A stretch of 64,000 bases of DNA from Salpingoeca rosetta. Its lineage: Eukaryota > Protista > Choanoflagellata. The notes beneath the pieces are model-generated. The model was not told where the DNA came from and did not search any database. It was given only the letters and a program-made list of their open reading frames with translations. Made by a program: the position numbers and the translations under genes. Each line of letters opens with the position of its first letter. The stretch's first letter is position 1. The DNA lies in assembly GCA_033442325.1 (NCBI GenBank), contig JAWQFM010000007.1:2048208-2112207 (forward strand), in the 5' to 3' direction. Positions 53,041 to 55,383 of this stretch are shown piece after piece.

Positions 53041-55383
53041 TCAAGACGACGCTGACGCCGTTGCTGCCTCGGCGGTATCCGATTCCTTCTCAGCCTCAAC
53101 TTGGGCAACCACAGCTTCAATCTCCTCACTCGACAACACCTACAATCGCAGCACCACCACCAAGAAGCAGCTGTGAGTGACGGCACACCATCCTTCCATC
53201 CACGACGACACACGCACAAACAAGCACAAGCACAAGCACAAGCAAAAAGAACAAGTCGGAAGGAACCCACACCCAAACAACCACCACCAACACACACACA
53301 CACACACCCACACCCACACACACACCCACACACACACCCAAACAACCACCAACACACCAACACACACACACACACACACACGCACCTTGAGTGTTGTGTC
53401 CTTGCGCATGACCGAGACCTCGATGTTCTTGCTGCCAGACTGGGCCACCTCGAGCAGGGCCTTGACTGCCAGCAGCAGCGCCTTCTCCTGCGTCTCCACA
53501 GCCTCGTCAGTAAAGTTCTTCTCAAGGTACTCCCGGCACGTCTTGGCACGTGGGCCGCCAATCGCATTCGCCTGCAGCCACACAACAACAACAACAACAG
53601 CAACAGCAGCAGCAGCAGTGAGTGGAGGGTGACCACGGTGCCTCAGTCGGCAAGCGTTCAGCAACAAAAGGGCGAGCAAGCAACCAGCAAATGGGAGGGG
53701 AACCGCGTAAAAGCCATCGCAATGCGCTCAACACAAACACAGATACGGCAGCACCAGCACCGGCTGTGTGCACTCTTGCAAATCAACACAACACGAAACG
53801 CTGACAAGAGTTAAAAGAGAGGCGTGGGTGGAAGCTCAGTCTCAACAGAAAAAAAGACAAAGAGGTTGTCGTCACATGTCCACACGTGTGTGGAGCATAG
53901 GCAACGAGGAATTCAATACGTCTGTTCGTCATTGCAGTCACACACGCACGCCTTCACAGCAACAGAAAAAGCAAGCAATCAAGGAAAGCAACGGGCGATT
54001 GATGATGGCTCAGAGGTCAACAGAAAGACAAAAGGTTGTCGTCACATGTCCACACATGTGCGTGGAGCATAGGCAACGAGGAATTCAATACGTCTGTTCA
54101 TCACCGCCATCACATCAGCCGAGCAAGAAGGGCAGGGCAATCAAGAGCAAGGCAAGAGGGCATAAGGAAACGCAGCAACGAAGAAGCACGCAAGGGCGCG
54201 TGCACAGGTGAACCAAGAACATCGGCACAAGCGCAACCACGGCTCAGAGGTCAACAGAAAGACAAAGTGATTTCGTCACATGCACGCACACACAAAGAAT
54301 GAGCGGAGCATAGGCAACGAGGAATTCAATACGTCTGTTCATCACAGCCAGTGGTTGATTGGTGCAGGCGGGGAAAGGGAGAGGAGGAGAAGGACACGAG
54401 GGAAACCAGGAAAACGAGGAAGGGGGGGGGAGGAGGAAAACAAGACAGAGGGAAGAGGGTCGACAAGGGGAGTACACTCGCTTGTGTGTTGGCAACGTGA
54501 GGCAGTACCGAACGTGCAGCAAAAGGAGAAGACAAGAAGGAAAAAGCAAGCAAAGTCGCGCACCTTCCATGCAGAGTAGTTTCCTGATGGTTCTGTTTGG
54601 AACAGGCGGGGTGTGCCATCTGGGTCGAAGCCAACAATGAGCGCGGAAACACCAAATGGTCTCCGGCCATTGCTCTGTGTGTATGTCTACGTGCGCGTTT
54701 TGTGTTTTGTGTGTGAACGTGTGTGTTTTGTGTGCGTGTGTGAGTGTGAGTGAGAGAGCGTGTGAGTTTCATGTGTGAGTGTGAGTGTATGAGAGTGAGC
54801 CGAGGCGTGCGTACATGCACGGCGGAAACCCACAGACAAACGTCCAGACTTGCACACACACACACACACACGCAGGCGTCGACGATTGCATGCCAAAGAA
54901 GCCAACCTGTTTTGTGGCGGCGATGAAGCGGGTCATGTACTCGACGGTGGGTGCATCCTCGACGGTGAGACGGTGGCTCTGGCTCTCGACACGGGCCTTG
55001 TTGACAAGGACGCGCGCGTCTGCAGTGAGGCCAGCAAAGGCGACGGCAATGTGATCATCGATGGAGGCAATCTTCCTCACGGTGCGTGTGTCCTGCAGCT
55101 TCATGGCCGACCGGCGCTCAACCGCCAGCACGACACAGTCCTTGCCACGGATGCCAACCTGCGCATGATGTTGGCGTGTGAGCGTGAGCGTGAGCAGGGG
55201 GAAAGGCGATGGGTTGGTTGATCATGTGCATCGACACATCACAGCACAACAAACACAAACACACAAAACCAGACACAACAAACGCACCGCTGTTGTTCCC
55301 TTGCGAACCGCCTCCAGTGCATACTCGACTTGGAACAGATGGCCATCCGGTGAGAACACCGTAATCGCACGATCGTACGACAT
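53041..55383 (-). CDS. PSMA7: 20S proteasome subunit alpha-4 (alpha type-7), multi-exon
   Basis: [81 protein letters not shown]|[27 protein letters not shown]. Confidence 0.98.
53833..53936 (-). ncRNA. Box C/D snoRNA copy 1 (snR57-like, 18S Gm1572-equivalent guide)
   Basis: Minus strand: C box ATGACGA, guide GAATTCCTCGTTG, D' CCTA, C' GTGACGA, D box CTGA. The terminal stem is weak. It lies in a PSMA7 intron on the host strand. Confidence 0.75.
54005..54110 (-). ncRNA. Box C/D snoRNA copy 2 (snR57-like)
   Basis: Minus strand ATGGC-g-GTGATGA...GAATTCCTCGTTG-CCTA...GTGACGA...CTGA-GCCAT, giving perfect C and D boxes closed by a 5-bp terminal stem. Confidence 0.88.
54237..54354 (-). ncRNA. Box C/D snoRNA copy 3 (snR57-like)
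   Basis: Minus strand CCACTGGCT-GTGATGA...GAATTCCTCGTTG-CCTA...GTGACGA...CTGA-GCCGTGG, with an interrupted terminal stem. Confidence 0.87.

Follow-up and report, generated by a model that had tools for sequence, protein, structure and literature searches.

Within the proteasome alpha-7 gene (Psma7) of the choanoflagellate Salpingoeca rosetta, the third intron carries three closely similar repeats. The questions raised by this locus are what these repeats encode, how many of them are likely to work, what they might act upon, and how several products could be released from a single intron. The analysis covered the window, by which we mean the whole 64-kb stretch of DNA in which the gene lies. 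The account that we favour, and regard as probable, is that the repeats are three paralogous tandem box C/D snoRNA genes, transcribed in the Psma7 pre-mRNA, each of which would guide methylation at an 18S guanosine taken to be the equivalent of G1572 in yeast.

The host intron and its three repeats

Five minus-strand exons, whose stop-free frames sum to 251 amino acids, encode the host of the cluster. In a word search the protein showed 100% identity to P0001, 'Psma7 protein [Salpingoeca rosetta]', proteasome alpha-7. The protein is encoded on scaffold GL832962.1 of GCA_000188695.1, the one assembly that carries the S. rosetta gene. RNA contigs and reads place the exon-exon junction exactly at 54564|53571; the intron so defined encloses all three units, which are read from the minus strand. 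The remaining Psma7 introns measure 129, 220 and 246 nt, making intron 3 four to eight times longer. A preliminary description of this DNA had placed the intron at 53575-54563; the end at 54563 stands, and the 3' boundary, which was 3 nt off, moves to 53572 on the evidence of spliced contigs and read ends. Its observation that the usual CA repeats are missing here is borne out, as there are no (CA)n arrays, unlike in the neighbouring introns, and only a CAG/CAA-type run at 53575-53618.

Reading of the strand at positions 53400-54750, together with a repeat finder, located three direct repeats on the minus (host) strand of intron 3. A 36-nt core is identical in all copies (A, 54340-54305; B, 54099-54064; C, 53927-53892), where 0 chance matches would be expected. 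Repeats, boxes and junction together agree with the initial reading of three tandem copies of box C/D snoRNA type, on the host strand of a single proteasome alpha-7 intron. The features of the cluster are as follows.

53572-54563, minus strand: Psma7 intron 3, host of the cluster; 992 nt, GT..AG; spliced contigs of runs X30 and X9, and loose read ends of two raw RNA runs that match the exons
54233-54357, minus strand: snoRNA copy A including its terminal stem; repeat, boxes and stem; 103 bits with a three-unit sequence model
54345-54339, minus strand: copy A, box C GUGAUGA
54335-54330, minus strand: copy A, accessory element GACGUA
54327-54315, minus strand: copy A, 18S guide
54314-54311, minus strand: copy A, D' CCUA
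54279-54273, minus strand: copy A, C'
about 54266-54248, minus strand: copy A, 3' guide
54247-54244, minus strand: copy A, box D CUGA
54114-54233, minus strand: spacer between A and B; 72% pyrimidine, fold not unusually stable (z -0.22); would have to be cut or degraded for A and B to come apart
54001-54113, minus strand: snoRNA copy B including its terminal stem; repeat, boxes and stem; 115 bits with the three-unit model
54104-54098, minus strand: copy B, box C GUGAUGA
54086-54074, minus strand: copy B, 18S guide
54073-54070, minus strand: copy B, D'
54045-54039, minus strand: copy B, C'
54013-54010, minus strand: copy B, box D CUGA
53945-54000, minus strand: spacer between B and C; 64% pyrimidine, fold not unusually stable (z -0.08)
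53816-53956, minus strand: snoRNA copy C including an extended outer stem; repeat, boxes and stem; 100 bits with the three-unit model
53932-53926, minus strand: copy C, variant box C AUGACGA (one deviation)
53914-53902, minus strand: copy C, 18S guide
53901-53898, minus strand: copy C, D'
53875-53869, minus strand: copy C, C'
53839-53836, minus strand: copy C, box D CUGA

Counted from box C through box D, the units span 102 (A), 95 (B) and 97 nt (C). All three have the putative internal boxes D' CCUA and C' GUGACGA, and box D CUGA, as originally reported, and when the copies are compared, both the invariant region 5' of D' and the divergent D'-C' loop are seen. Deviations from the box consensus number one in C' GUGACGA and two in D' CCUA (vs CUGA). 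In predicted folds, the AUGCUCC that follows the guide on its 3' side in the core forms part of an internal hairpin joining D' and C'. Copies A and B have the canonical make-up of box C/D snoRNAs (RUGAUGA, CUGA), and from their sequences both look fully functional. They also share a 3' (D-side) guide, being identical over the 19 nt upstream of box D; the preceding 6-8 nt differ, and the retention of the 19 nt beside such change suggests constraint. In copy C this guide is altered by a UUU insertion and by AGA instead of ACCU beside box D. No credible target of the 3' guide was found in the 3' 1237 nt of an 18S rRNA (the metagenome locus L001, described below). A 14-nt run in 18S was rejected as a target, with five G-U pairs, a G-U at the would-be methylation position, and p about 0.03 before multiple testing.

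Terminal stems, which in this class bring boxes C and D together, were assessed by folding the sequences that flank each unit against shuffled controls. With 12-nt flanks, copy A forms a stem of 10 bp interrupted by a single bulge (-15.6 kcal/mol, a value that 0.2% of shuffles attain) and copy B one of 8 bp (-13.4 kcal/mol, 0/1000 shuffles), whereas the stem of copy C is weak (23% of shuffles). With 25-nt flanks, copy C gains an extended imperfect helix of -20.2 kcal/mol, reached by 3.5% of shuffles, which is the upper limit for the extended stems of all three copies. Non-cognate pairs of flanks give only -2.6 to -8.9 kcal/mol, compared with the cognate values for A and B. The proposal that each copy has its own stem thus holds in part: the flanks are complementary in each, and the stem sequences of A and B differ, but copy C is weak near the boxes.

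Outside the units, similarity falls away. Unit identity is 78-87%, and that of the 60-nt flanks is 48-62%, which is the level of shuffled sequence (mean 55%, maximum 64%). An invariant guide, a divergent loop, copy-specific stems and spacers at background level fit the suggestion of selection on guide, boxes and stems, and this pattern of divergence is the one expected of old tandem duplicates that would have been retained by selection. Gene conversion could be partly behind the perfect 36-nt identity. A short pyrimidine-rich motif on the host strand, TTGCTTGCTTTTTC, also occurs upstream of each unit at varying distance (53965-53978, 54180-54193 and 54540-54553), two of the copies being exact and the third matching at 86%. 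It may have been left over from an ancestral homology of the spacers, or its recurrence may be a coincidence of low complexity.

To speak of three equivalent snoRNAs, as was done at first, is too strong, since copy C is visibly degenerate. With its box C and terminal stem weakened and its 3' guide broken, it is probably a weaker or decaying copy in which the 5' guide is retained. This raises the alternative that one copy alone, most likely B or A, gives a working snoRNA, and that the others are decaying duplicates that are transcribed and then degraded. The variant box C, weak proximal stem and disrupted 3' guide of copy C fit this alternative, as does the result that the RNA-seq libraries showed no discrete RNA from any copy. 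However, copies A and B combine intact boxes, strong and different stems and an identical 19-nt 3' guide with spacers at background level, which is unexpected for a neutral duplicate, and a single working copy therefore seems unlikely.

The 5' guide and its predicted target in 18S rRNA

The invariant region contains an element, GAAUUCCUCGUUG, common to all three copies, that is a perfect 13-nt Watson-Crick complement of the 18S sequence CAACGAGGAAUUC. This match was scored on the 18S of L001, which comes from a foreign eukaryote (281 bits with Rfam SSU_rRNA_eukarya), and on the Rfam consensus, rather than on S. rosetta rRNA. A 13-nt run in the L001 18S was reached by 1/2000 shuffles of the snoRNA region, and CAACGAGGAAUUC stands in upper case, that is, as near-universal, in the Rfam consensus. 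The antisense element is longer than the 10 nt taken as the minimum, ends directly at D' CCUA, and pairs at its fifth position with the G of CAACG. The predicted methylation target is therefore the G within 18S CAACGAGG. By a count of positions on the yeast 18S sequence, we take this nucleotide to be yeast G1572, which would presumably lie three nucleotides 5' of the conserved m7G site. In yeast 18S rRNA, Gm1572 has been experimentally mapped and assigned to snR57 (PMC4344503). Taken together, the predicted 18S target of the 5' guide is well supported at the sequence level.

The invariant block is much longer than the guide itself. In duplex predictions with the Rfam consensus, the upstream GACGUA pairs with UACGUC beyond the helix-43 hairpin, giving a putative accessory pairing across helix 43. 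Extra pairing of this type has been documented for yeast and human snoRNAs, as have C'/D' motifs that are highly divergent but active (PMC3116282). In the mechanism that we envisage, the 13-nt antisense element beside D' (CCUA) would bring the snoRNP's fibrillarin-type methyltransferase to the 18S guanosine, and the GACGUA-UACGUC pairing on the far side of helix 43 would add to the guide duplex.

The same pairings could be read differently, with the RNAs serving mainly as pre-rRNA chaperones that clamp the flanks of helix 43 near the m7G without methylating, or that time the methylation of the neighbouring base. [quoted passage not shown] Set against this, the fifth-nucleotide rule hits exactly a site that is methylated in yeast, and divergent C'/D' motifs are known as active, so that a primarily chaperoning role appears distinctly improbable.

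Elsewhere in the window, a second 13-nt perfect complement of the L001 18S (976-988) was considered as a guide, at 31931-31943 on the plus strand, and rejected, with no recognisable snoRNA boxes nearby. It is probably a chance match, because the part of 18S concerned is variable between species.

Uniqueness, transcription and proposed release of the cluster

Duplication during assembly had been named as a possible objection. It is excluded here, because 78-98% of sampled words of the stretch are present in sequencing runs from 9 studies, and contigs of run X9 bridge cores C and B, and likewise cores B and A, with zero mismatches. The cultures of S. rosetta probably all derive from one isolate, so this multi-study support is no measure of conservation within populations. 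The concern that the repeats might belong to a dispersed family is likewise met within the 64-kb window, where the three-unit sequence model finds the three units only (E<=10); a fourth copy was sought in the same 64 kb and none was found.

Wider searches returned no relatives of the units. In an Rfam scan of the whole window, no family attained its gathering score, and a permissive Rfam scan (E<=10) gave no snR57-type match. Matches at chance level in the permissive scan, which were rejected, were to sn2903 at 16 bits, bacterial Hrs13 and archaeal sR19/sR14. A homologue pattern made up of box C, ACGTA and the guide was found across metagenomes at a single locus, L001, which is not a snoRNA. 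It was rejected as antisense 18S rDNA, and it matched because antisense 18S itself has TGATGA, ACGTA and the guide sequence. Positions 1-1237 of L001 correspond to contig Ga0302311_10274188 and cover the 3' 1.2 kb of the 18S gene of an environmental eukaryote with GC-rich variable regions. An 18S scan of viral contigs gave no match.

Relatives of the host protein were also sought. Among the matches listed, the closest alpha-7 relatives (92%, 88% and 86% identity) are transcripts or EukProt entries only, and alpha-7 of Monosiga is absent from the best 120 hits. The alpha-7 gene of P0008 is intronless and lies on a gene-dense 86-kb metagenome contig (locus L002, 3001-3744), with 80% identity over exon 2; its source is presumably a picoeukaryote with a compact genome.

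The intron is transcribed with its host. In two raw stranded RNA-seq runs, X24 and X37, reads span the entire intron 3 and come from the host strand alone; relative to the exons, their depth is 2-8% in X24 and roughly 10-30% in X37. Box C/D snoRNAs are as a class stable RNAs of about 70-120 nt, bound by fibrillarin, Nop56, Nop58 and Snu13. Neither a discrete RNA of ~105 nt nor peaks over the units were seen in these libraries of ~100-nt paired reads, which do not retain such RNAs. Depth over the units (53849-53930, 54054-54135 and 54259-54340) is roughly half that of the adjacent spacers and flanks in both raw runs. Excision, structure and library bias are possible causes, and the libraries are not interpretable on this point. 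In run X30 (2011), contigs cover 53898-54296 only, from core C to core A, at a depth of about 9, where exons have a depth of 41; no contigs lie farther out in the intron, on either the 5' or the 3' side. This could represent a processing intermediate, or just sparse coverage.

Run X37 also contains joints that define a further feature.

53806-54093, minus strand: cryptic exon of 288 nt, rarely used

The acceptor AG of this exon (54095-54094) falls within the core shared by the repeats, in copy B, while the donor GT (53805-53804) is found beyond copy C on its downstream side. Eight reads with 5 different starts carry the joint 54093->54564, and at 53805 there are 8 loose ends whose sequence agrees with the beginning of exon 4. 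GAACAG|A in the core is thus able to serve as a 3' splice site, and it is the same in all three copies. The frame of the cryptic exon meets a stop at the third codon, and it is for this reason regarded as splicing noise. The idea that cryptic splicing frees the copies separately was rejected, as use of the acceptor would sever copy B behind its box C, and the spliced product has an early stop.

That the repeats are not snoRNA genes at all, but a local tandem repeat, a mobile-element relic or an intronic splicing element in which boxes and 18S match coincide by accident, would accord with the lack of an Rfam match and the low-level use of a cryptic acceptor in the core, yet it is very improbable when the boxes are combined three times over with cognate stems and a 13-nt match to a known methylation site, in only three copies within 64 kb, and in units that are conserved while their spacers are not.

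For three box C/D snoRNA genes in one intron, the route of release has to be considered. Because the three units occupy a single intron, at distances of 264, 438 and 672 nt upstream of its 3' splice site, release would most likely combine stem-driven assembly, cuts and trimming. The long stems around the units would nucleate snoRNP assembly, either on the pre-mRNA or on the intron once excised; exonucleases would trim from the intron ends back to the outer snoRNPs; and the members would be separated by one or more endonucleolytic cuts within each of the pyrimidine-rich spacers. Endonucleolytic separation of this kind has been described for polycistronic precursors in plants and yeast (PMC5122169). 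Stem-loops of RNase III type were sought in both spacers, and no fold there exceeds shuffled sequences in stability. Five molecules of run X24 have a common end at 54130, in the spacer between A and B, 17 nt upstream of the stem of copy B; five ends are too few to call a cleavage site, and constitute weak evidence.

The tandem family of box C/D genes, consisting of two canonical copies and one degenerate copy, is real and apparently unannotated. In the literature searched there was no dedicated study of choanoflagellate snoRNAs, and no Rfam family matched in the window; these would therefore be newly recognised snoRNA genes in a model for the origins of animals. The cluster predicts a yeast-type 18S methylation in S. 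rosetta, and we know of no report of methylation at the equivalent of yeast G1572 in human. It also offers a compact, editable locus, in a species closely related to animals, for studying the release of several snoRNAs from a single intron.

Comparison with known systems

Among Rfam families, the nematode box C/D family sn2903 (RF01194) shows a weak resemblance to the 5' end of copy B, over box C and ACGUAUUG. Its score is 16.2 bits (E = 1.8), where Rfam sets the gathering score at 50, so that by the Rfam criterion the unit is not a member of this family.

The closest counterpart in predicted function is yeast snR57, whose target is the very nucleotide, in a universally conserved stretch of 18S, that is predicted for the S. 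rosetta units. The architectures differ. In snR57 the C'/D' motif is not beside the active guide, and its working guide is therefore on the D side, whereas the S. rosetta guide is beside D'. Furthermore, there is no detectable similarity between snR57 and the S. rosetta units in sequence or by covariance model. The units are thus, as far as prediction goes, an snR57-like guide in function, which departs from the snR57 family in both architecture and similarity. Fungal snR57 belongs to an snR57-snR55-snR61 unit that is polycistronic or has one snoRNA per intron. The S. rosetta cluster resembles it in being a transcription unit with multiple snoRNAs; the fungal unit, however, joins different snoRNAs, one per intron or exonic, while the S. 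rosetta cluster consists of three sister copies in one intron of a protein gene.

In silkworm and vertebrates there is one snoRNA per intron. The vertebrate one-per-intron box C/D genes are like the S. rosetta units in their sense orientation, in having a highly expressed housekeeping gene as the host of the intron and in their dependence on host transcription. They are unlike them in that S. rosetta has three units in one intron, at 264, 438 and 672 nt, with long flanking stems instead. The distance that favours splicing-coupled assembly in mammals is reportedly about 70-80 nt, according to Hirose and Steitz. A wider proposal, which we offer tentatively and consider doubtful, is that the closest relatives of animals routinely free several box C/D snoRNAs per intron by a splicing-independent, stem-driven and endonuclease-dependent route, as plants and green algae do, that the branch-point-coupled, one-per-intron mode of vertebrates would be a derived simplification, and that the snoRNA, by a bipartite pairing beside the m7G site, would hold 18S helix 43 on its two flanks.

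The nearest likeness in organisation is to the intronic clusters of rice, Drosophila and Chlamydomonas, which are often tandem paralogues and in which, as here, at least two snoRNA genes lie on the host strand of one spliceosomal intron. The S. rosetta cluster differs from these in its choanoflagellate lineage and in having a proteasome subunit as host. Intronic snoRNA clusters of this organisation are named in PMC2780460, and those of Chlamydomonas are cited in PMC5122169; in Drosophila they have been described mainly for H/ACA snoRNAs. The view that a polycistronic intron is a peculiarity of this lineage was thus overstated, since intronic clusters are known in rice, Drosophila and Chlamydomonas, and the contrast that had been drawn between animals and plants or algae was too sharp, as Drosophila has intronic clusters. 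Because plants, flies and green algae are already known to have this arrangement, the S. rosetta cluster extends a known pattern rather than revealing a new one.
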